Sequence record: NC_042060.1
Length of the DNA: 64,000 nt
Reading direction: 5' to 3' (one strand)
Positions 2,995-63,099 of this stretch are shown in pieces. The position numbers and the translations under genes are program-made. The notes under the pieces were generated by a model. That model searched no databases and was not told the origin of the DNA. It saw only the letters and a program-made list of their open reading frames with translations. Position 1 is the stretch's first letter; each line of letters starts with the position of its first letter.

Positions 2995-5445
2995 TTACTT
3001 AATGGCACGATTCACAGCAGTGTTAATTGCATTGGTAAGAGCTACAATGTAATCAACTAGAACGGTGTGGTTTTCAGCCGATTGGCCAACAACTTCCCAT
3101 ACTGCACTAGCTAGTTGCCGGACTTTCTTTTTACCGGCTTTACTATCCATGCTAGCCACTTTAGAGATATCACGGTTAGCTTGGTCAAGACGACGTACAC
3201 CGCGGTTACCGCTAACTTTTAGAGAGGCATTACCAAGACCAATTAGAACTTTAGAAAGTTTCATTAGTTCAGTAACGTCCTTACGGCTAACTTTAGCAGT
3301 AGCAGTACCGGTAGCACCCCATTCACCAGTTGGAAGTGCAATAGCAGCTAATCGTTCAATATCTTTACTAGTGCGACCAGTTACATCACGGCCAGACTTC
3401 TCGAAGGTAAAACTACCTTCTAGTTTTCCACTGATAAATGAACTCTCAGGATATTTCTTAACAGGTACTTCTAATTTAGTTGCTTCTTCTAGAGCCTTAT
3501 CAATAGCTTCTTCACTATCAGCTTCAATAGCAGTTGATAGGTGACCAACTAAACGTTCGATGTATTCACCATCGATTTTGAAGCATTTGTTAATAATATC
3601 GCTAATACGACGAACTTCTCCAGCAACACCGCGTACTAGATTATCATCACCTTTTAGAATACCATTAATTTTGATTTCTTTATTTTCAAAATTATCAGTA
3701 TCTTTAAGCTTAACTAGAAGTTGGTCAGCTTTAGTATTAGCTGCGGCTAGTTCTTTTTGGTTAGCTTTAACATGGATGGATGCATTTGCACCTTCAGCAA
3801 TGTTGTCGATAATATTTCGAACAAACTTACCAATAGTGCTATTAAATGATTCTAGCGAAGTAACCATCGCCTTATAGTAATCTTCTAGATTACCATAACC
3901 ATAATCTTCCATTGCTGGAACACCAGGTGAATAGACATCAAAGGCGTTATGCAGGCGTTCTAAACAGCTATTAGCATGTACGATGAACTGAGGACTATAT
4001 TGCTTATGTTCTAGGCCATAATGTAGAATCTCAAGCATGGATTCATTTGATGCCTGCTCTTCAAGTAATTGACCAATGGTTTTCTTACCATCTTCAATGT
4101 CATCTTCAAGCTTATCGGCTTCTTCAACTGCCTCATCAGCAGTCTCGTCAGCTTCTTCAACATCATCTTCAGTTACTTCTACGTCAACATCCGGGATGTC
4201 AATTTCACCTTCAGCTAACTTTTCTTCGATGTCATCTTCTGAAACGTCATCATCTGTTTCTGCAACAATTGTTTCACTGTCGTCTTCAACAGCACCTTCT
4301 TCAATTGTTGGTTCGGAAATAGTAGATGCCGTTTCGGTTTCAGCAACTGTTTCTTCAGTTTCAGCTTCATTGATTAATACATCAGTAGAATCACTGTCAT
4401 CATTAGTTAATTCTTCTTCAGCTTCATCCCGAACTTCTTCCAATTCGCTTAAGCCTTCTTCAGCTACTTCTGCTGTTTCGGCAGCTTCTTCTACAATTGG
4501 ATCAGTTACAGCTACTTCTTCATCAACTGCTACGATTTCATCTGGTTCAGCTTCAGCAGGAACACTTTCAGATTCCGCCTCTACTACTTCAGCTACTTCA
4601 CTATCAGTTGTATCCGGCGTATCTTCTACGGTTTCAACAACTTCTGTTTCAGCATCAGCTACAGCTGGTTCAGTAATTTCGACTTCTTCTGTTTCAGTGA
4701 TCTCTGTCTCAGGTTCATCATTGGAACTTTCATCAGCAGTTGTTTGCTCAGCACCGGCTTCTTCAGGAGTTACATCGTCATCAATACCAGGGACTGCTTC
4801 ACTTACAACTTCACCAGCATCTAACACTTCATCTGGTAGTGTATCCATGGTTGATGAAACAGGTTCATCACCAGCTGGAAGTTCCTCAGATAGTGGTGCA
4901 GGCGGTGGAGTTTCGTCACCAAGTGGGGTTTCTTCAGTGGGGGTTAATTCCACTGCTGTTTCACCAGGTGCTTCTGCAACAGGTACTAGTTCAGTATCAT
5001 CAGCCGCATCTTGTGCAGCTTCAATAATTTCAGTGGTTGAATCTAAAACCTCTTTACCGCCTTCAGAAATTGTACCGATTTCTTCAGCGATTTCAGCTTC
5101 AGCAACTTTAACTGCTTCTTCGCCTTCTTCGACACTAGTGGTAGCTAGCGGTTCAGGAATACTTTCCTCAACAACAGTTTCTTCTGGTACAACTTCTTCA
5201 ACAATTACTGCTGACTTATCAGCAGCATGTGCTGTTTCTTCATGTTCTTCAGCAGAGATAATATCAGTATCTGTTTTAACAGTTTCATTCTCAATAGTTG
5301 CAGATGCATCATTATCTTTCTTTAAATCTTGAACTAGTTCATGATCATCTTTAACAGATGTCTCGACTTTGGATACATCCTGTTCCACAGCCGTACCATC
5401 TTGGTTCTCAAGGCTGGCTACATATTTGTGAATATTTACCATCAT
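2995..5445 (-). CDS. Inner-body/head ejection protein (gp97-like), 816 aa, with long acidic N-terminal propeptide
   Basis: Extremely E/D/T/V-rich first ~450 aa; S/A-x-E processing motifs (ASLE, AME, TSLE) typical of phiKZ head-protease substrates. Confidence 0.75.
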   Translation of the reverse strand: MMVNIHKYVASLENQDGTAVEQDVSKVETSVKDDHELVQDLKKDNDASATIENETVKTDTDIISAEEHEETAHAADKSAVIVEEVVPEETVVEESIPEPLATTSVEEGEEAVKVAEAEIAEEIGTISEGGKEVLDSTTEIIEAAQDAADDTELVPVAEAPGETAVELTPTEETPLGDETPPPAPLSEELPAGDEPVSSTMDTLPDEVLDAGEVVSEAVPGIDDDVTPEEAGAEQTTADESSNDEPETEITETEEVEITEPAVADAETEVVETVEDTPDTTDSEVAEVVEAESESVPAEAEPDEIVAVDEEVAVTDPIVEEAAETAEVAEEGLSELEEVRDEAEEELTNDDSDSTDVLINEAETEETVAETETASTISEPTIEEGAVEDDSETIVAETDDDVSEDDIEEKLAEGEIDIPDVDVEVTEDDVEEADETADEAVEEADKLEDDIEDGKKTIGQLLEEQASNESMLEILHYGLEHKQYSPQFIVHANSCLERLHNAFDVYSPGVPAMEDYGYGNLEDYYKAMVTSLESFNSTIGKFVRNIIDNIAEGANASIHVKANQKELAAANTKADQLLVKLKDTDNFENKEIKINGILKGDDNLVRGVAGEVRRISDIINKCFKIDGEYIERLVGHLSTAIEADSEEAIDKALEEATKLEVPVKKYPESSFISGKLEGSFTFEKSGRDVTGRTSKDIERLAAIALPTGEWGATGTATAKVSRKDVTELMKLSKVLIGLGNASLKVSGNRGVRRLDQANRDISKVASMDSKAGKKKVRQLASAVWEVVGQSAENHTVLVDYIVALTNAINTAVNRAIK

Positions 5446-23980: not shown

Positions 23981-23984
23981 CGAA

Positions 23985-24015
23985 ATAAACCCTCCCGTAA
24001 TGGGAGGGTTTTATG
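23985..24015. terminator. Bidirectional terminator
   Basis: AAACCCTCCC / GGGAGGGTTT 10-bp stem between convergent units. Confidence 0.85.
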
Positions 24016-24083
24016 ATGTGTCGAAGTTTATGTTAGCAGTAATGATCAATTGATAATATTTAATTAGGAATACCTTCCATTTT

Positions 24084-24452
24084 TTAATATCCTTCATTAA
24101 GTAGTTCTGCTAGAGCACGTGCCTGTGAAATATCAGTAGAAGCAAAAACATCAGAAAGATAGTTATCATGTTCTTTTGCATTCTGACGCAATTCATCCAT
24201 TAGATGTTTATTAGATACCGCCCATACTTTCCACAGATTTTTATAATCATCATATTTGGGATTATACCCGTCTAGTGGTGGTTTTCCTTTACCAGCTTTC
24301 CAATGGTTGGAGTATATGCGATATCCTTTACAATCTAACTGCCAAGCTTCCTCAATTGTTCTGCCATCAGGAAGCCTTGCGTAAAGAGCCGAGAATCTTT
24401 TGTCACCAACAGATGAACATTCATATCCTCCTCGGCGCTTCCACTGATATAT
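24084..24452 (-). CDS. Unannotated 122-codon ORF lacking an ATG/GTG/TTG start (ATA start or -1 frameshift extension of the DNA polymerase subunit)
   Basis: Hand translation IYQWKRRGGYECSSVGDKRFSALYARLPDGRTIEEAWQLDCKGY...ALAELLNEGY*, 369 nt without stops. It fills the whole gap to the terminator, and the in-frame stop lies just upstream of the C CCA AAG heptamer. Confidence 0.75.
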   Translation of the reverse strand: MYQWKRRGGYECSSVGDKRFSALYARLPDGRTIEEAWQLDCKGYRIYSNHWKAGKGKPPLDGYNPKYDDYKNLWKVWAVSNKHLMDELRQNAKEHDNYLSDVFASTDISQARALAELLNEGY

Positions 24453-38657: not shown

Positions 38658-38964
38658 CGTTATGTTCAGGTAAGTTCGCTACGCTTACCCCGCCTCTCGT
38701 ATTGCAGGCAGCTGCATGTCACCATGCAGACCAGACTATATCTTAACCTTCACCCTAGGTGGTCAGGTCCCTCCCATTTCCACTCGCTTGAGTGTACTCC
38801 GCGTAACCGGATAGTCGTTGAACGTTCAATCCATTTCTGGAAAGCTTCGCTGCTGATTGTCTCATTGAGATGTCCCAGCAATTAGAGAGGATTTACTTGA
38901 CTCTTTCGAGATCAAGCAGGCAATTTGACAATATCCATTCCTGAGAGATGGATGGATATTAATT
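38658..38964 (-). ncRNA. Group I intron, 307 nt, no ORF
   Basis: P AATTGCTGG, Q AATCAGCAG, R TTCAACGACTA, S AAGATATAGTC. P1 is GGU|AAUU paired to AAUUGCC, with U-G at the splice site, and the intron ends in G. Splicing restores FHGG-KGV in frame. Confidence 0.93.
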
Positions 38965-40682: not shown

Positions 40683-40688
40683 AGCAAG

Positions 40689-40718
40689 CCAGGGGACCCT
40701 TAGGCCCCCTGGTTTATG
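40689..40718. terminator. Bidirectional terminator
   Basis: CCAGGGG / CCCCTGG stem between convergent genes, then TTTATG. Confidence 0.75.
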
Positions 40719-40723
40719 CCGTG

Positions 40724-42115
40724 TTACAGTAGACGACCCATCATTTGGTTTCCACCTAGATTCATCATCGCGGTGTTACCATTACCAGCTAGAGCGGGGT
40801 TTAGTGCTTGTGCAAATCCACCACCCATCGGCATTTGATTGCCCATGAGTTGCATCATTTGCGGATGCATATTAGCCATCATTGGTTGCTGTGGCTGCAT
40901 CATCCCAGGCATTGCAAAGTTATTGTTCATCATAACAGGTTGTTGCATCATTCCGGGTTGAGCAAATTGGTTTTTCTGCCCAGCGTTTAGAAGATCTTGG
41001 ATAGATGCTTTATTGCTAGTTTGAACTTGTTGTGCGGGACGTTGAGGTGCCTGAGTCATTGCTACAGCTTGACTCATAGATGGATTAACATTCACAGTTG
41101 TGCCTACTGGTACACGTGTAGAAGTAGTTTGTTCTTTAGCAGTATTACCCACTTTAACTACACTATCCTTTTTCTGGACAGGAATTTGGGCAACTGGGTT
41201 TACAGTTTCAGAAGCTTCTTCTTCTACTTCATTGCTGACTCCTTCATTACCATCAAGAGAGGGGATCTCACGTTGCATCTTTGCAAAATCAGCAATCACC
41301 TTCTCATCAACTTTTGAATAAGGTTGAATAGCATCATCGAAGATCAGGCGATACTTATCAATAACACTATTTAGTTGAGTAGTGATTTTGTTAAATGCCT
41401 GGATAAGACATACAAAATAAGGTGCTACCCGCTCAACTGTTCCTGCTGAATATTCAGTTGGTGAATCACCAAATGGTACAACTAGTTTAAATAGTTCGAT
41501 TAGAACTGGCCGCTGTTTCTTAGGTACATTTACTCCAAGGATATCATCTTTAGAATAAAGATCCTCTACGATAGGGAACCGAATAACGCAGATACGGTTA
41601 ACTGTCTTCCCATCAAATTTACCATTTGCTTTTAGATACACGCTTACAAAACGTGAACGTTTTTCAGCAGCTTTGACAACCTTATTAAACCACTCAATGG
41701 TATCTGGCTTAGCACCGGATAGTTTCTTTAGGAAGTCTGAACATTCTGGTGGAATGTCTTTATGCAGAGTGGAGTCGGCAGCTACTTCTAAAATACGTGA
41801 AGTAAGATACTTCACAGTAAACATTAGATTAGCCTTAACTTGACGCTGCATATGCTGTAGTACTTGAGAAGTACCTAGCCGAGAGATCTTTTCAGATAGC
41901 GGGTGGAAGGCGATGTAATCATCGCCTAGCCCTTTACGAAGCCAATCTTTAGTAGGTACCACTAGTCGCTTACCATCTACCTTTGCAGGTGCAGGTCGAC
42001 CAAGTGGATCGAGAATACTGATCATATCCTCTTCACCTACTTTGTATCGGAAAGCAGGTAATACTTGATCACTATAGAACTTGGAAAGAGAAATCGTAGG
42101 CATTGTTATCACCAA
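40724..42115 (-). CDS. Conserved nucleus-associated protein (gp70-like) with Q/M/N/G-rich low-complexity tail
   Basis: Folded N-terminal ~290 aa, then QPGMMQQPVMMNNNFAMPGMMQPQQ...; synteny. Confidence 0.7.
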   Translation of the reverse strand: MVITMPTISLSKFYSDQVLPAFRYKVGEEDMISILDPLGRPAPAKVDGKRLVVPTKDWLRKGLGDDYIAFHPLSEKISRLGTSQVLQHMQRQVKANLMFTVKYLTSRILEVAADSTLHKDIPPECSDFLKKLSGAKPDTIEWFNKVVKAAEKRSRFVSVYLKANGKFDGKTVNRICVIRFPIVEDLYSKDDILGVNVPKKQRPVLIELFKLVVPFGDSPTEYSAGTVERVAPYFVCLIQAFNKITTQLNSVIDKYRLIFDDAIQPYSKVDEKVIADFAKMQREIPSLDGNEGVSNEVEEEASETVNPVAQIPVQKKDSVVKVGNTAKEQTTSTRVPVGTTVNVNPSMSQAVAMTQAPQRPAQQVQTSNKASIQDLLNAGQKNQFAQPGMMQQPVMMNNNFAMPGMMQPQQPMMANMHPQMMQLMGNQMPMGGGFAQALNPALAGNGNTAMMNLGGNQMMGRLL

Positions 42116-47122: not shown

Positions 47123-48289
47123 TTATTTGAACTCTGTCAATAATCCCAATACCCGCTGGATCTGAGCAGCGTCCGCTGTAAATTTTTCAATATCTGGAAT
47201 AATTAAATCAGAAATACTTTCTGGAGTTATATCCAAAAATTCTGATAAATCAAAATTCTTTAGGCTATCTGACACAGTATTTTTCTTTGTAGTAACTTTT
47301 TCAATTAAGATACTCCATGAAAAATTAGGATATTCATTTTGAAATGTATCGAGATCACCAGTAGCTACATCACCTGGATTACATCTTAACCTAATTGCAG
47401 AGTTAGTTGGTAGTGTCTTGATATGTTCTTTAACAGTGTAATTAAGTTGCTTAGTATCCATTCCATGGACATTCAAAGTATCGTATCTACGCGCACCCTT
47501 ATTCTCAAGGAATGTAGCAGTCCATTCGCCATTTTCTTTCACCACAACATCAAATAATCCTTTTGGAATTTCATCGTTGTGACTTAATCGGTCAAATCCA
47601 CCGGCAGCTAAAATGCGTTCATAGATAGACATCTCATGAACATGTCCACCATTGATCATATATTTAGTTAATGCTAAATATTCATCTGGATCATGTGTTG
47701 GCTCTTCAACAATGCTAGGTAGCTGGTGTTTAAATGCACCATGTAAAATAGTAAAGTCAACTTGAGATATACCTTTCTTATGCATTAAATCTTTTACTTG
47801 ATTTAAAGTCTCTGATGTGGATGGATTCCATTTATCAGGGACATAAAGGAAATATGCATCTAGTTTCTCAATATACTCGATATCGAGAATCTTTGAATAA
47901 TGCAAATCAACTTTAATATTAGCATTATTCTTTTGTTCTACGAAAAACTGCATTTGCCCACGATCGTGTGATGGAGTCCCTTCAACAATACGGATCATTA
48001 CATTATACATTTCACATTTGTAGAGAAGTATTGTAATAAATCTATCAATTGCGTATGCAGCTGGATCACCATTGTTTAATTGGCGATCAAATAAATCCCC
48101 TGTAATAATCAACATATCAATATCTTTTAAAATTGTATCAGGGACAGTTTTCCAAAAGTTATTGATGATTAATTCAGTAGGGGTTTGGCGATGCCCCATA
48201 TGGACATCGCCTACTGTTAAATATCGAAATATGCCAGGTTTCTTTGTTTTATCAGTCTTCATATTCGTCACCGTAAACACATTCATCAT
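47123..48289 (-). CDS. Mre11/SbcD-like metallophosphoesterase nuclease (gp65-like)
   Basis: GDVHMG, ITGDLFD, EGTPSHD, LHG, GGHVH motifs; likely start MKTDK at 48262. Confidence 0.85.
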   Translation of the reverse strand: MMNVFTVTNMKTDKTKKPGIFRYLTVGDVHMGHRQTPTELIINNFWKTVPDTILKDIDMLIITGDLFDRQLNNGDPAAYAIDRFITILLYKCEMYNVMIRIVEGTPSHDRGQMQFFVEQKNNANIKVDLHYSKILDIEYIEKLDAYFLYVPDKWNPSTSETLNQVKDLMHKKGISQVDFTILHGAFKHQLPSIVEEPTHDPDEYLALTKYMINGGHVHEMSIYERILAAGGFDRLSHNDEIPKGLFDVVVKENGEWTATFLENKGARRYDTLNVHGMDTKQLNYTVKEHIKTLPTNSAIRLRCNPGDVATGDLDTFQNEYPNFSWSILIEKVTTKKNTVSDSLKNFDLSEFLDITPESISDLIIPDIEKFTADAAQIQRVLGLLTEFK

Positions 48290-52565: not shown

Positions 52566-52766
52566 TTACGACTTCAACCATTCTTCTAATGGCGGTAAAT
52601 ACTTCTCATGCGCCCAGTTAATAATTGTTTCTACAACAGGACCCTGTAATTCAAGGTTACCTGAGATTTCATGTGGTTCATCAATAGATAGAACCCATGT
52701 ATGTGGAGCAATGCGTTCAGTTGCTTTGGTTAAATACACATCAGGCATTAACGTTAAATTAAGTTG
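52566..52766 (-). CDS. Non-virion RNAP beta' N-terminal subunit, exon 2 (gp56.1-like)
   Basis: QLNLTLMPDVYL... follows the intron terminal G; splicing gives NADFDGD-QLNL. Confidence 0.88.
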   Translation of the reverse strand, partial: QLNLTLMPDVYLTKATERIAPHTWVLSIDEPHEISGNLELQGPVVETIINWAHEKYLPPLEEWLKS

Positions 52767-54290
52767 CACTATCTTCATACAGCATCGTCAGCGACATGTC
52801 TAAAAATCATCTGGGTCATTTTCATATTTAAAAATGAACCCATTAATTGGTCGACGGTCTTTCTTTTTGAGTTTGCTAGTTACTACTTTCTTTGATAATC
52901 CAAGATCGAGATATGCCTGCTTGGCTGATTTGTATTTCAAAATCTCGCCAGTTTCCACATTTTTCACAAGTGTGGTCTTATTTTTAGCCTGACTATACTC
53001 AATGGATTCATCCCAGGTTGGCCATTCTGAACCAACCCGACGTACAATGTACCTATCCATAATGACTGGATAAATTGCATGTCCGCTAACTTTCAAAGAA
53101 ATCGTACCTACACTAACCCCTATCGCCTCACTTGCTTTCTTTTGCGAGTCATATTTCCTGATTTCACCCGTAACGATATCCTTTATCTCAATACCGTCGT
53201 GCTCAAGAACAATTCCGTCCGTGTTAATTCCGCGATTTTTCAACATTCTCATGATCGCGGTATTCTTTGCTGATCCAATATAACCGGTTTTGATTGCATT
53301 TCCATGCAACACATTTTCACTCTGGGTTACCCATTCTAGGTTATCGGGTACTGTATTGTCACGATCACCATCTATGTGGTTGACCACTTTCTCATTGATG
53401 GTGTTATCGTATTCAATAAATGTCAGTGCAGCTACACGGTGTAAATTCGTTCCTACATAGGTGCCATCATCTCGACGCAATCCAAGATCTCTGTATCCAG
53501 TTGTCGCCAAACTTGTTAATTTAGCTGAACCTTCAAAAAGACTTATGACCTTGAGTTCATCATTGATTGCATAGCAGGTAAAACTAGGGATGAAATAATA
53601 TCCTGGGAAGGTGGGAACCTCCAATCCTTCTTCCGGGAATTTCCAAATCAAGTTTCTAGGATGAATATTGTCTTCATCTCCATCAGAAAACAATATTTCG
53701 CAGCGGCTAACAAACTCTAATGGCGCATGCCAGCCTTTAAAACACACTGCTATCAACTTAGTAACATGAATGGGTAGTCTATGCCATGGTAATTCAAGAA
53801 CGTAATGTCGGTTTATTGGATCTATCAATTTATCCAAAAATCGATCATAGACTAACCCATCCAGAGTCAGTCTATAACGCCCGAATGTACCGGGAATCAC
53901 AATTTCTCTCGATTTGGGTATACGACTGTAAATAAACACATATCCTCCATTGGAAGACATGTCGCTGCTGTACCGTCCACTTAATATCTCCCGACATTAA
54001 GTAACTGCTCTAGCTTTCACTAGATGGTGAGACTATATCTTCTTCCCAGAGGGAAGCCTTCTATTTCGGACCACTTGGCCCTACTCTACTCCCTTGGCTG
54101 CTTTCGCAGTGGTTTCGATAGTCGTTGAACGTTCTTCCTATCTCGCCTCACGGCAATACGTAGAAGCTTCGCTGCTGATTGTCCAATCCTAACACTTTTC
54201 AAACCGTTACATTTTAGCTTTCGCTATCTGCTTTGGTAGTTAGGCTCTAAGGAGGTTCCAGCAATTAAGAAGGTTAGGAGACCAATTAAA
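52767..54290 (-). mobile_element. Group I intron (1524 nt) carrying an HNH homing endonuclease
   Basis: P1 GGAGAU|...GUCUCC with U-G at the splice site; P/Q/R/S cores at ~54258-54267, 54170-54184, 54118-54130 and 54030-54041; terminal G at 52767; the ORF is looped out of a 13-bp stem. Confidence 0.93.
52800..53960 (-). CDS. Intron-encoded HNH homing endonuclease (gp56-like), 386 aa
   Basis: LHRVAALTF...VNHIDGDRDNTVPDNLEWVTQSENVLH; two C-terminal NUMOD1-like repeats; codon usage differs from the flanking genes. Confidence 0.9.
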   Translation of the reverse strand: MSSNGGYVFIYSRIPKSREIVIPGTFGRYRLTLDGLVYDRFLDKLIDPINRHYVLELPWHRLPIHVTKLIAVCFKGWHAPLEFVSRCEILFSDGDEDNIHPRNLIWKFPEEGLEVPTFPGYYFIPSFTCYAINDELKVISLFEGSAKLTSLATTGYRDLGLRRDDGTYVGTNLHRVAALTFIEYDNTINEKVVNHIDGDRDNTVPDNLEWVTQSENVLHGNAIKTGYIGSAKNTAIMRMLKNRGINTDGIVLEHDGIEIKDIVTGEIRKYDSQKKASEAIGVSVGTISLKVSGHAIYPVIMDRYIVRRVGSEWPTWDESIEYSQAKNKTTLVKNVETGEILKYKSAKQAYLDLGLSKKVVTSKLKKKDRRPINGFIFKYENDPDDF

Positions 54291-55553
54291 ATCTCCGTCG
54301 AAATCTGCGTTTGGAGCCTTAAGGCATAAAACTGACATGCTGATAGAATTATCATTAATGTCATCTTTTACTTTAGTAATAAAGAACTGCTGCGTAGATC
54401 CACGTTGAAGCGTTGGATTTCGGTGAAAAGTACAACCCATCCCTTTATAAGGGGCTGCTTCTGCAATTAGCTCTTTAAATAGATCTGCAATGATTTGGTT
54501 ATATTGAAGTACATTCTCATATACAAATGAGAATGCTTCACGAGTTGTCATGTTAAACTTTGCTTTTAGTTTATTGGTTAGATGATACTTTAATAATTGA
54601 CAACCTACCCCCCAAGGGATATGTAGTTCATCATAATCATGCGGGTCACTAATAGAAGTGATTACTGCACGTGCCGTAGCGTTGAGACGAGCACCAAACA
54701 TGTGACGCCGAGCAAGACCAGGCTTTTGAGCAATTCGTGATTTTGCGTAGATCTCGTAGAACTGGCCATATAGTCTTAGTCCTCGCATAGTCCTATTCTG
54801 AGCTTTAATTGGACTAAGTGGTACAGATGATGCATCAATACTAGCGAAGGTTAAGGTAGCATCAATTGCTGCTTCAATTGGTTTATCTAAGTAAGTACCA
54901 GATGTGGTTGATTCTGCTACGAAACAGAGTTTAGAAGGAACTGGTAAATATTTAGGGAATAACTTATCTTTATTCTGAGCAACGAATTGAGCGAATTCGG
55001 ATTTATTATTAGAGATAATATTTGCATCTAGTAGGAATTGGAAGATCTCATTGAAATTATCAATGAAGTGATTTAATCCTCTTTCAAATCCTCGATGCAG
55101 TAGCCTATCTACTTTCCTGCGTGTTTCCTTAGAACCAATAGATTCTACATCGTATCGATAAGAAGTATCAGTTAGATATGCTAAGAAATCGAATTCTTTA
55201 GTTACTAGATATCCGGTTAGCATAATGATTAAACGTGGGTTAATTAGGCTACGTACATGTTTTGGTGTACGAACCCACATTGATGGTTCGATAGGGCGGC
55301 TAGAAGTATTGACAACTGGAGTATTACAAATATCACAGATTACTCCGAGTTTATGTGCGTCTTCGATTGCTCGACAATCACAGCTTACACTACTTTCAAT
55401 TGCTTCTGAATCTTGGAAATGAGAATAGAAATGTCTATCAAATTCTTCTTTCTCATCTGAGTTACTCGTATTGTAATCATTGGCATAAATTCGTTTACCC
55501 GTAAATTGATCATGTACTTCATCATGATCAACAACTTTGGCATAAAGACCCAT
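54291..55553 (-). CDS. Non-virion RNAP beta' N-terminal subunit, exon 1 (gp55-like); spliced product 487 aa
   Basis: Zinc-binding CDC..CDIC, GLARRHMFGARL, RNPTLQR and the catalytic NADFDGD. Confidence 0.93.
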
Positions 55554-55578
55554 ACCAAACTCCTATTTATCGATTAAC

Positions 55579-55620
55579 AAAAAAAGGAGATATAAGCGGC
55601 CCCCGAAGGAGCCGCTATAT
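55579..55620 (-). terminator. Intrinsic terminator of the chimallin transcript
   Basis: The minus strand reads AUAUAGCGGCUCC-UUCG-GGGGCCGCUUAUAU, then CUCC and U7. Confidence 0.85.
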
Positions 55621-55945
55621 CAGTTTTTACAATGGACCACCAACGGAGCCTGGCCCGATCCTAGCGTCGTCTACAAAGCTTAACCTCCGCTCTTCTCTGT
55701 AGCGCTCTGACACTAGAACCTTTTACCATCCATTGTAGTTTTTTGATCACACGTCACCTTTTGAGTAACTCCTTTCGGTTAAGTGATCTATCATCCTCGT
55801 GTAGTGATAGGTCGACCTAGACTAAGTCCACTAGTCGATTACTTCACGGAACCTACTCCTAACCGTTATCACTGAAGTGAACCGGGTCGCAGTATTAGAA
55901 TCGGGATGTTACTTATTTAACATCCCTATCTACCGAGGTATTTCC
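55621..55945 (-). ncRNA. Highly structured non-coding RNA / chimallin mRNA 3' UTR
   Basis: At least seven stems identified by eye, some needing G-U pairs available only on the minus strand; GC content visibly higher than other intergenic DNA; no long ORF. Confidence 0.6.
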
Positions 55946-55947
55946 TA

Positions 55948-57828
55948 TTAGTACCAGGTACCCGGTGCATTATAGGAAGGAGCGCCGTAAGTTTGACCCA
56001 TGCTGCCAGCCATGCCAACTTGTGCACTACCAGAAACAGCCATGTTACCCATACCGGTGTAACCAGCGAAGCGCTGTTGACCGAAGTTGGTAATTAGGTT
56101 TTCCATGGTTACAGTTACACCAGCTGCTGCTGCTGCGGCATCCATTGCGGTGATGAATTTCGGGTTAAAGGTTAGACGACGAGCACGACCAGTATAGGTA
56201 ACGTTACCTAGGTACATCTTGTCGAAGCCTTTACTGTTATTCATACGACGCACAATGTGGTCATTACCTACCTGAGTAGCATACCAGGTCTTCCACTCTT
56301 GGTCATTACCTTCAGACATGTTCATGGCACCTAGAACGTCGAGATCACGACGGTCGCTTAGTTCACCATGCTCATCAGTGTAGTGACCGAGGTCTACTTC
56401 ATGATGGTTGTCAAAGATAATCGGACCAGCTTCAGCTAGATTATAGAACTGACGGAAATCAGTGCCGTATAGGTTAGTTAGAGCTTGGAAGATCAGACTA
56501 ACTGCACGAGCTTGGTTTACGCCACCAGCTGCATCTAGGACGACTTGCTCAATAGCTGAGTTGTCTCCCATTGGATCGACATCGATCTGGAATGCAGGGT
56601 TCTGGTTAACCATCTTGTTCATTAGCATTACGAAGTTGCTGTCGTCTGCCATGAATGCTTCGGTGCGAGTTTCAATCGCTTTACCTAGCTCTGAGTAATA
56701 ACCAAGTGCACCAATATCACGCATCTTACTAGTAGCGATCTTCGGCATTAGAGTACGAGCCCATGCCTGAGATGCAGTTGCACGATACGCGTTACCAAGC
56801 GCGAACAGCCACATTTCTAGAGTCCATGCTTGGATCCAGGACGCCTTACGAACGTCAGTAATAACGATGTAAGGAGTGAACTGCGGAGGTAGAACTGCAC
56901 CAGGTAGAGTTACGCCAAACATGCCTTGTTGCTGGCCAGTGGTCGGAGTCCAATGTAGATCTACGAATAGACTAACTTGGTTTAGCTGGCTATCGGTATC
57001 ATAGAACTCGTTCTCAGGTACGTTGGTTTTCTTACCACGGCTAGTGGAGATGACCAGGTCAGAACGGATCGGATTACCACAGCTATCTTTAACCGGAATA
57101 CCATTGTAGTCTAGATTGCAGGTAAGCTGTTCGTTTTCTGCTTTGATGTGGGTCGCAATAGAGAACGGAGTCTCATTGTTACGACGCGCAATAGCATCTT
57201 CACAGATATTAACGGATTCAACTAGTAGGTTCTTAACAGCTAGTTCATCTTTGAAGTCGAAGTCAGCATACACTGCACGGGGACCGGCAGATAGTACTTC
57301 TAGACCAGGGATGTTGTAACGGTTCCGTAGGAACTCGCCGATCTTGCTCCAGTATTGAGCAGTGAATACATCACGCGGTAGTACCTTCTCTTCAATGATG
57401 TCATCAGTTAGACCATTGTTGATTTTGTGGGTACGGGGACGGATGCGAGTACCAGGTAGGTTATCGAGTACTAGAGTACGAACGAATGCCTTCATGGAAC
57501 CATTGATATCTTTAGCTAGTTTAACAATGAGTAGACCAGCCATACCCACTTGTTGTGCATCGCGATCGAAACGATGGATATCGAAGTCATCAGGTAGGTC
57601 CTGATGGCGGATTGCTTCTTCTTTTACTTTAGTGAATACTTGTAGGGCATCTGCTGAACGAGCATCAGAGCCATCTAGCCGACCAGAGCGACGCATTAGA
57701 TGGTTAATGCCAGTAGTGGACCCAGGTGCGCCAGCCGGACGTTGAGCTTGACGTTGTGCAGTGGGTTGCGGAGCCGGAGCGGTAGCTTGAGTTTGAACGG
57801 TGCCGATTTCGTTTTCGTTAACAGCCAT
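55948..57828 (-). CDS. chmA: Chimallin, major phage nuclear shell protein (gp54-like), 626 aa
   Basis: Recognised N-terminus [12 protein letters not shown]..., size, highly biased codon usage, and position directly upstream of the nvRNAP beta' gene. Confidence 0.9.
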
Positions 57829-62898: not shown

Positions 62899-62980
62899 TT
62901 CACATATCTCTCAGTATACTTATTTTTTAATTATAGTGAATGATTTCTCTCTTTTTAACTAAAAAAGAAAAGGAAAGAAT

Positions 62981-63001
62981 GGGTACCCTATACGGGTACC
63001 C
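62981..63001 (-). terminator. Hairpin of two self-palindromic GGGTACCC units, followed by a T-rich tract
   Basis: GGGTACCC-TATAC-GGGTACCC; the minus strand continues ATTCTTTCCTTTTCTTTTTT. Confidence 0.6.
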
Positions 63002-63068
63002 TAAATTGAGAGGTAGCACATCAACTTACATTCACATTAGATGATGTAAGTAAGTAAAAATAAAACAA

Positions 63069-63098
63069 CATAAAAGGAGCCATTATGGCTCCTTTATA
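63069..63098. terminator. Terminator hairpin
   Basis: AAAGGAGCCA / TGGCTCCTTT; the minus strand continues TTATG. Confidence 0.8.
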
Positions 63099-63099
63099 G

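Follow-up and report, generated by a model that had tools for sequence, protein, structure and literature searches.

A structured, modular noncoding RNA between the chimallin and beta'-N genes of Pseudomonas phage PA7 and its relatives

The stretch of DNA described here, 64,000 nucleotides (nt) of sequence record NC_042060.1, is called the window and comes from PA7, a phiKZ-like Pseudomonas phage. Between chmA, the gene of the nuclear shell protein chimallin, and the gene for beta'-N, the N-terminal beta' subunit of the non-virion RNA polymerase (nvRNAP), lies a gap of 394 nt (55554..55947), which in blastn searches matches Pseudomonas phage PA7 at 100% identity and phiKZ (positions 47,529-47,922) at 95.7%. 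The gap holds an RNA of about 315 nt that extends, on the minus strand, from the chmA stop side to an intrinsic terminator. The RNA occupies the 3' untranslated region (UTR) position of chmA, its upstream gene on the same strand, and folds into three domains that are exchanged between phages. That it is a genuine structured RNA under selection is held with high confidence. Its function is explained only tentatively, as that of a protein-binding noncoding RNA (ncRNA) borne by the chmA 3' UTR. An original prediction, made from the sequence letters, had placed a highly structured RNA on the minus strand 3' of the chimallin gene, and both the z-score of the fold and the consensus structure confirm this.

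The consensus fold was calculated with RNAalifold from 13 homologues (12 distinct sequences). It comprises 94 base pairs in 15 helices, and 99.7% of the cells are paired. The features listed below are taken from this fold and its pair counts.

55796..55937, minus strand: domain A, a four-way junction
55934-37 with 55796-99, minus strand: P1, the closing helix of domain A
55929-32/55896-99 and 55918-26/55903-11, minus strand: P2, a long hairpin of domain A with an internal loop
55885-94/55854-64 and 55877-80/55869-72, minus strand: P3, a hairpin of domain A with a UUCA/UUCG loop
55842-47/55804-10 and 55826-38/55812-22, minus strand: P4, a long hairpin of domain A
55745..55788, minus strand: domain B, a three-way junction of GAUCAC/GUGAUC, a CC-GAAA-GG hairpin and a GUUAC...GUGAC hairpin
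55630..55735, minus strand: domain C, a long branched hairpin
55728-35/55630-37, minus strand: helix C1 of domain C
55711-20/55657-66, minus strand: helix C2 of domain C
55695-702/55671-78, minus strand: helix C3 of domain C
55689-91/55682-84, minus strand: small hairpin of domain C with a GGAG loop
55650-54/55639-43, minus strand: side hairpin of domain C with a GCUCCG loop

The GGAG and CUCC loop bases of domain C never vary, and the two loops are candidates for a loop-loop contact. Eight stems had been proposed earlier from the sequence, and all are complementary as stated. Six of them belong to the consensus: 55903-11/55918-26, 55812-20/55831-38, 55745-50/55783-88 (around CC-GAAA-GG) and, in the 3' domain, the set of three nested stems. 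The other two compete with consensus helices. The stem ACUUCA/UGAAGU (55841-46/55873-78), kept in all 13 close homologues and absent from PhiPA3, competes with the covariation-supported P3 hairpin and with the P4 helix. The stem CUAUCA/UGAUAG (55788-93/55805-10) has an unpaired cell in up to six of the 13 homologues (four at one pair, two at another) and competes with P1 and P4.

Compensatory changes bear out the prediction of an element that acts at the RNA level, on the chmA strand and from the chmA stop to the terminator, and is selected for its structure. Double changes that restore pairing were found at eight pairs in eight different helices, compared to none or one in six slid controls, and on four of five measures at most one of 500 column shuffles reached the observed value. 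The fifth measure, the count of further pair types, gave no excess over 500 column shuffles. At least four lineages contributed to the double changes: the Phikzvirus/Pawinskivirus split, on whose branch five of the pairs changed; W10-2, in which one P4 pair went from A-U to G-C; HPP-Temi, with an A-U to G-C change in the second hairpin of domain B; and phiKZ/PA02/NK1, in which a C2 pair went from U-A to G-C. In domain A the compensatory changes sit in P1, P2a, P2b, P4a and P4b, and the C1 helix of domain C carries an A-U to G-C double change in Pawinskivirus. Between PA7 and PA1C, 14 of the 188 paired positions differ, producing nine changed pairs and no broken one, and 33 of the 133 unpaired positions differ. 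When PhiPA3 is added, domain A shows double changes in eight of its 47 pairs, versus one at most in slid controls. Furthermore, 11 G-U pairs of the consensus are invariant, so that the fold is specific to the minus strand; this agrees with the earlier remark that the inner stems use G-U pairs workable only on that strand.

It is scarcely credible that there is no RNA structure here and that the sequence is a DNA-level signal or a small protein gene. Small open reading frames (ORFs) are annotated at this place in HPP-Temi and HHBS36, and Psa21 has an antisense one, gp057. However, PA7, HPP-Temi and PhiPA3 have no ORF in common; the candidates have GTG or TTG as start codons and differ in their ends; and the invariant G-U pairs together with the double changes fit only a minus-strand RNA. 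The ORFs of 35 and 62 residues annotated inside the element in HPP-Temi (L023) and HHBS36_1 (L024) are not conserved and are probably false gene calls. In almost every genome record the region is without annotation, and the few 'hypothetical proteins' placed there are overlaps from the flanks or short, non-conserved gene calls.

The minus strand of the gap folds with a minimum free energy (MFE) of -132.7 kcal/mol (z = -4.68), a stability reached by none of 100 shuffles, compared to -98.9 kcal/mol (z = -2.24) for the plus strand. Thirteen apparent gaps of at least 125 nt were folded for comparison. At -0.337 kcal/nt the chmA/beta'-N gap is the joint most stable of them, level with the 125-nt gap 40683-40807, and it is the most stable of the long gaps. 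Its GC content is 0.44, the window mean being 0.373. The earlier description of the other gaps as short and AT-rich holds for composition in most cases, GC being mostly 0.25-0.37, but gaps of 200-536 nt exist, and three others have a GC content of 0.46-0.53, including the group I intron gap at 0.47. As a separate observation, four of the gaps are unusual in folding or composition and may contain further structured RNAs, terminators or short genes: 62899-63099 (z = -8.0 on the plus strand and -6.4 on the minus strand), 41844-42071 (minus strand, z = -3.35, GC 0.46), 23981-24274 (minus strand, z = -3.96) and 40683-40807 (GC 0.53).

The element is better conserved between genera than ChmA itself. 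Between PA7 and the Pawinskivirus-type phages its overall identity is about 86% (93% for paired positions, 75% for unpaired ones); in the same comparison ChmA is 49% and beta'-N 69% identical at the amino acid level, and the third codon positions of the two genes are 39% identical, which is saturated in both. These figures bear on a rather unlikely explanation, that the element is a cis-acting stabiliser of the chmA mRNA whose compact 3' structure blocks 3'-to-5' exonucleases and the entry of RNase E, raising the yield of ChmA. Its very stable fold would suit such a role, as would its location: chmA is an essential gene with very high expression, and the element lies directly between its stop codon and its terminator. 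However, the 75% identity of the unpaired parts, against a neutral 39%, exceeds what a passive roadblock needs, the terminator hairpin alone suffices in the relatives D6 and Noxifer, and neither three ornate domains nor cassette swaps between unrelated folds would be predicted. Stabilisation can coexist with a protein-binding ncRNA.

The degree of relatedness varies along the locus. The ChmA of Pawinskivirus is nearer to that of PhiPA3 (65% amino acid identity) than to that of PA7. Within the element, the ends (P2 and the terminator) of Pawinskivirus resemble PhiPA3 and the interior is almost identical to Phikzvirus; PhiPA3 has rewritten or replaced those interior parts in which Pawinskivirus matches Phikzvirus. 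Two forces are probably at work together, strong constraint on the element and its horizontal exchange between P. aeruginosa phages during co-infection.

The element is not one unit, as originally supposed, and consists of three separable modules, which have been replaced individually in phiHQ and PhiPA3. The genomes of phiHQ and PA1C are 99.7-99.8% identical in both flanks, and a segment of 305 nt in phiHQ (L003:2697-3001) replaces exactly the 161 nt that contain domain A in PA1C (L004:2994-3154). Domains B and C are kept in phiHQ and together score 184.7 bits. The incoming segment is an unrelated structured module, with 73-82% identity to the chmA/beta'-N gap of Psa21 and to a site beside tRNA-Leu in Ralstonia phage RP13. 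Psa21 and D6 are 82% identical in their flanks and have 367 nt and 20 nt, respectively, at the same site. Two covariance models, R1 and R2, were built, and R1, which represents domain A, matches domain A of PhiPA3 with 46.4 bits (E ~1e-11). There P1, P2 and the P4 base are conserved, P3 has a new sequence and a GAAA loop, and P4 carries an expansion of 157 nt. The MFE fold of PhiPA3 itself yields the same four-way junction followed by domain B, for which the match is weak (16.6 bits), and a different structure stands in place of domain C. The borders of the exchanged pieces fall where the fold predicts one domain to end and the next to begin, which supports domains that fold and function independently.

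Part of the segment that replaced domain A in phiHQ is a second conserved noncoding module, unrelated to the first and located by sequence comparison.

phiHQ L003:2843-2998, Psa21 L006:4910-5054 and RP13 L026:2440-2597, strand not stated: second conserved noncoding module

In RP13 this module lies 10 nt before tRNA-Leu. The stem of its hairpin covaries (CCCAG/CUGGG, CUCGA/UCGAG, CCAGA/UCUGG), its 27-nt loop is conserved, and the loop sequence UACGGU is complementary to a downstream ACCGUA, making a candidate pseudoknot. The module has no match in Rfam. In Psa21 it has been annotated as an antisense protein, gp057, probably through a mistaken gene call. A separate intergenic region of RP13 (L026:89-164) matches the twister-sister ribozyme RF02681 with 36 bits, the gathering score being 34. 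Structured-looking sequence was also seen just 3' of chmA in 201phi2-1 (L007:4759-4983), Phabio (L008:4753-5036) and Viktualia (L010:4762-4888). A GGGAUC-GAAA-GGUCCC hairpin directly after the stop codon is common to 201phi2-1 and Phabio, and a CCUAAAU-CUGG-CUAAA-GGU block to 201phi2-1 and Viktualia. Diverse RNA modules may be common at the position after chmA.

The element itself is narrowly distributed. By blastn it is present in 57 phage records, all from P. aeruginosa phages, with 95-100% identity in phiKZ-like phages and 85-87% in the Pawinskivirus group (PS119XW, PA1C, HPP-Temi and others); phiHQ matches by the 3' part only and PhiPA3 by the terminator only. Taking blastn and the covariance models together, the carriers are confined to P. 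aeruginosa phages of Phikzvirus, Pawinskivirus and PhiPA3, and the element is not general to Chimalliviridae as the original prediction had implied. The R1 and R2 models found no copy in Psa21, 201phi2-1, Phabio, Noxifer, Viktualia, D6 or RP13 and no second copy elsewhere in the window. Scans of IMG/VR, JGI metagenomes and GTDB genomes with DNA patterns returned only PA7, PhiPA3, Psa21 and three chance matches in coding regions (L014, L027, L028), and a search of IMG/VR with the chimallin protein returned PA7 alone. The gene order chmA to beta'-N is kept in all carriers and in Psa21, 201phi2-1, Phabio, Viktualia, Noxifer and D6. The spacer from the chmA stop to the terminator ranges from about 20-40 nt in D6 and Noxifer, which have the terminator only, no such RNA and complete flanking genes on both sides, up to about 470 nt in phiHQ.

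This distribution is relevant to the suggestion, which appears decidedly unlikely, that the RNA is a cassette directed at the host or at competitors, titrating or decoying a P. aeruginosa factor or acting against co-infecting phages. Riding on the first abundant transcript, it could have as targets an RNA-binding protein, a nuclease or a defence sensor. The RNA is restricted to clade members that infect P. aeruginosa, in three genera; its carriers form no supported clade in either the ChmA or the beta'-N tree; genomes that are otherwise nearly identical differ by the gain, loss or replacement of entire modules; and the resemblance of Pawinskivirus to Phikzvirus inside the element and to PhiPA3 at the ends and in ChmA suggests exchange. 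However, Rfam gives no match to a host small RNA, GGA or A-rich motifs are not enriched by count, and the distribution may mirror the sampling of phages. The backbone of both trees is unresolved, so the trees alone cannot separate horizontal transfer from loss.

No described RNA family fits the element. A permissive cmscan of Rfam with the gap and its flanks (54500-57000) gave no family at E values up to 10, and seven homologous loci searched at E values up to 0.1 gave nothing in the chmA/beta'-N gaps. There is no match to GOLLD, ROOL, OLE, raiA, HEARO or small self-cleaving ribozymes in the gaps of PA7, PhiPA3, phiHQ and Psa21, and none to a riboswitch, T-box or leader family at E values up to 10. 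Neither ARAGORN nor the Rfam tRNA model detected a tRNA or transfer-messenger RNA in the window or in the homologous loci. Several resemblances noticed by eye were dropped as having no Rfam support or excess over chance. Among ribozymes these were cores like those of the hammerhead or hairpin ribozyme and, in the Psa21-type module, an 'AAAGUCC' reminiscent of RNase P; the others were a GGUGGU motif as in T-boxes and an enrichment of GGA (RsmA-type) or of GGAG (similar to a Shine-Dalgarno sequence). A group I intron was likewise rejected: RF00028 gives no match in the gap at E values up to 10, the same library finds both true introns of the window, and the element interrupts no gene, being intergenic, after the chmA stop and before the beta'-N ATG. 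It is very improbable that the element is selfish or the decaying remnant of, for example, an intron or a mobile RNA that brings the phage no benefit. It does behave like a cassette, and the window contains a pair of group I introns that carry homing endonucleases, the closer intron lying 1.3 kb downstream. However, no group I, group II or ribozyme match appears even at E = 10, although the real introns are found; the site is always the same, intergenic and without an ORF; and compensatory evolution shows that the fold is maintained.

The element ends at a terminator that is followed closely by the beta'-N gene.

55579..55621, minus strand: intrinsic terminator, a bulged stem of 14 bp capped by a UUCG loop and followed by UCC and U7 (sequence and MFE fold)
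55589..55621, minus strand: terminator hairpin (MFE fold)
55579..55585, minus strand: U7 run of the terminator (sequence)
55551..55578, minus strand: 25-nt spacer with the Shine-Dalgarno sequence AGGAG, and the beta'-N ATG at 55551-55553 (sequence)

The UUCG terminator and the beta'-N start codon 25 nt past it, both noted originally, are seen in the sequence and the MFE fold. A simple promoter/terminator scan did not list the terminator, probably because of the bulged stem. Ahead of beta'-N, a similar UUCG-looped hairpin and U-run are present in PhiPA3, PA1C, phiHQ, Psa21 and D6; in the hairpin of Noxifer the loop is UUCGG. The corresponding terminator of 201phi2-1 and Phabio closes the structured spacer and is followed by a small inserted ORF; in Phabio another terminator of this type stands immediately upstream of beta'-N. 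The spacer of 25 nt would be too short to accommodate a promoter of its own. For gp107 of 201phi2-1, the beta'-N homologue, a promoter was looked for and none was found (PMC11512511), and expression of beta'-N therefore probably depends on read-through.

Given this layout, the element might be a leader or attenuator of beta'-N that senses a ligand, a protein or the phage RNA polymerase and sets the read-through of the terminator. The closeness of the terminator to the start codon, the lack of room for a promoter and the 201phi2-1 result all fit, and the GCUCC loop of domain C repeats part of the terminator's 5' arm. Nevertheless, this is quite improbable, and the antitermination put forward in the original prediction is disfavoured, as is a riboswitch. 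Inspection of the sequence and the MFE fold revealed no antiterminator pairing with the 5' arm that would exclude the terminator. Domain C is closed by its own covarying helix, and by inspection only the 5-nt loop GCUCC could compete for the 3' arm. The same arrangement of terminator and beta'-N occurs in D6 and Noxifer without the RNA, PhiPA3 has kept its terminator 97% identical although the adjacent domain C was replaced, and no riboswitch, T-box or leader was matched in Rfam.

The preferred reading, that of a protein-binding ncRNA in the chmA 3' UTR, has independent published backing for its link to ChmC, which had been raised as a possibility for the PA7 element. In PhiPA3, the coverage of ChmC in enhanced crosslinking and immunoprecipitation (eCLIP) peaks between chmA (gp53) and gp54, where no gene is annotated, and Enustun et al. 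read these peaks as small RNAs bound by ChmC (PMC11077065). That gap is the one that holds the PhiPA3 homologue of the element. Transcription, abundance and the crosslinking of ChmC in the PhiPA3 homologue are known from the literature, as is the fact that chmA is driven by both an early and a middle promoter. The element lies on the chmA strand, after the stop codon, and ends at the intrinsic terminator of chmA, as a 3'-UTR-derived ncRNA does. The RNA would be transcribed as the 3' UTR of the chmA message, which is very abundant, and end at the shared UUCG terminator. Its three domains fold into a defined architecture maintained by selection, and the whole would serve as a protein-binding module, with ChmC as the candidate partner, the only one for which there is experimental support, obtained in PhiPA3. 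It would probably accumulate as a stable 3'-UTR-derived species, shielded by its own structure and the terminator hairpin. Processing, protein scaffolding and downstream effects may be part of its action. The separable domains would be cassettes traded by co-infecting P. aeruginosa jumbo phages.

Several points weigh against this explanation and keep it tentative. The eCLIP evidence concerns PhiPA3, and its authors attribute to ChmC little sequence specificity among phage mRNAs (PMC11077065). The phiKZ studies by differential RNA-seq, Grad-seq and Oxford Nanopore Technologies (ONT)-cappable-seq (Wicke 2020, Gerovac 2021, Putzeys 2024) name other ncRNAs and none at this position. The 57 phage records count as no more than three or four effective lineages, and the covariation statistics are therefore based on a small number of independent events. 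Within Phikzvirus there is no extra conservation, the element of PA7 and phiKZ being 95.7% identical and synonymous sites 95%; ten of the 17 differences cluster in one C2 strand and the adjoining internal loop. Finally, the element is accessory and not core to nucleus biology, because the close relatives D6 and Noxifer do without such an RNA.

It is also conceivable, if unlikely, that the chmA 3' UTR as such is a landing pad for exchangeable accessory RNA cassettes, which, carried on the first and most abundant phage transcript, would be cytoplasmic before the nucleus forms and would act on a host-specific factor or assemble with ChmC at the shell. The cassettes may include the PA7-type domains A, B and C, the pseudoknot module of Psa21, phiHQ and RP13, and the modules of 201phi2-1 and Phabio. 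The host factor may be a defence sensor, a nuclease or the ribosome, and assembly with ChmC may serve mRNA handling.

Phages that form a nucleus are defined by the chimallin gene, whose message is the most abundant of the early transcripts and carries this RNA. As a protein-binding ncRNA, the element would be a concrete candidate for the unexplained ChmC eCLIP peaks and a specific ligand with which to study mRNA handling at the phage nucleus. That genomes with 99.8% identity differ by the replacement of whole folded domains suggests accessory RNA functions that evolve like protein anti-defence islands, a mode of cassette evolution hardly described for phage RNAs. In practical terms, several likely false gene calls have been flagged, and the compact, independently folding domains lend themselves to structural study.

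The genes on either side are as follows.

55948..57828, minus strand: chmA (chimallin, nuclear shell protein), 626 aa, matching Pfam PF25677 over its full length with 1119.8 bits
54291..55553, minus strand: exon 1 of nvRNAP beta'-N, the downstream gene and homologue of phiKZ gp55, with a weak match to Pfam RNA_pol_Rpb1_2

ChmA of PA7 is 99.2% identical to gp54 of phiKZ, and its gene ends in a double stop, TAA TAG, 5' of the element. Per-gene tables of phiKZ transposon sequencing show zero insertions in orf54 (chmA) and orf55. The beta'-N gene is split (52575-54312) by a group I intron, RF00028, at 54008-54312 (minus strand, 74.8 bits), which carries an HNH/NUMOD endonuclease ORF (52800-53960). 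Homology to the intron-less genes of PA1C, PhiPA3 and phiHQ stops at 54291 and restarts at 52760, placing the end of exon 1 near 54291 and exon 2 at about 52575-52760; a mechanically called ORF of 437 residues (54240-55553) therefore reads into the intron. In the same phiKZ transposon data, the exon 2 ORF (PHIKZ056.1) has no insertions and the endonuclease nine. The 56-kDa gp55 of purified nvRNAP is consistent with a spliced product; contrary to this, one ONT study reported no evidence of splicing. The second group I intron, also RF00028, is at 38712-38940 (minus strand, 84.2 bits). In PA1C, beta'-N is annotated from L004:3418, whereas the ATG aligned with the PA7 start is at 3383 and in another frame; an indel in the record may account for the discrepancy.

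The element can be compared with several known systems. Like the riboswitch, T-box and put-type antitermination leaders, it is a structured RNA directly upstream of an intrinsic terminator and an essential gene, but it has no family match, no alternative antiterminator pairing was seen on inspection, and in sister phages the terminator context is free of the RNA. With the group I introns it shares a GC content of 0.44-0.47 in an AT-rich genome, the neighbourhood, carriage by a phage and mobile behaviour; unlike the two introns, with their 74.8 and 84.2 bits, the gap gives no match at E values up to 10, and the element is intergenic. The 3' UTRs of flaviviruses contain arrays of independently folding exonuclease-resistant RNA (xrRNA) and dumbbell modules, which are duplicated, lost or swapped and yield stable subgenomic flaviviral RNA (sfRNA). 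The analogy lies in modularity, with no relationship in sequence or fold, and the principle of xrRNAs, which involves a 5'-to-3' exonuclease, is not known to hold in Pseudomonas. GOLLD, ROOL, OLE and raiA are, like the element, large and multi-domain, with strongly conserved unpaired regions; they are often phage-borne, and their functions are obscure or only recently emerging. The element is smaller and narrowly distributed, has no Rfam match and lies in an mRNA 3' UTR instead of beside tRNA genes, although the module that replaced domain A in phiHQ does adjoin tRNA-Leu in RP13.

The 3'UTR_PHIKZ298 RNA of phiKZ (PMC8545117) and ncRNA1 and ncRNA2 of PAK_P3 (PMC10914365) share with the element the strand of the upstream gene, the position after its stop codon, the use of its intrinsic terminator, the absence of an ORF and conservation among relatives. 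They are about 100-210 nt long and consist of two simple stem-loops, whereas the element has about 315 nt, 15 helices and three junction-containing domains, which are exchanged as cassettes; its discrete processed species is putative. The element is an RNA family new to description, within a known kind, the structured ncRNA borne by a phage 3' UTR.

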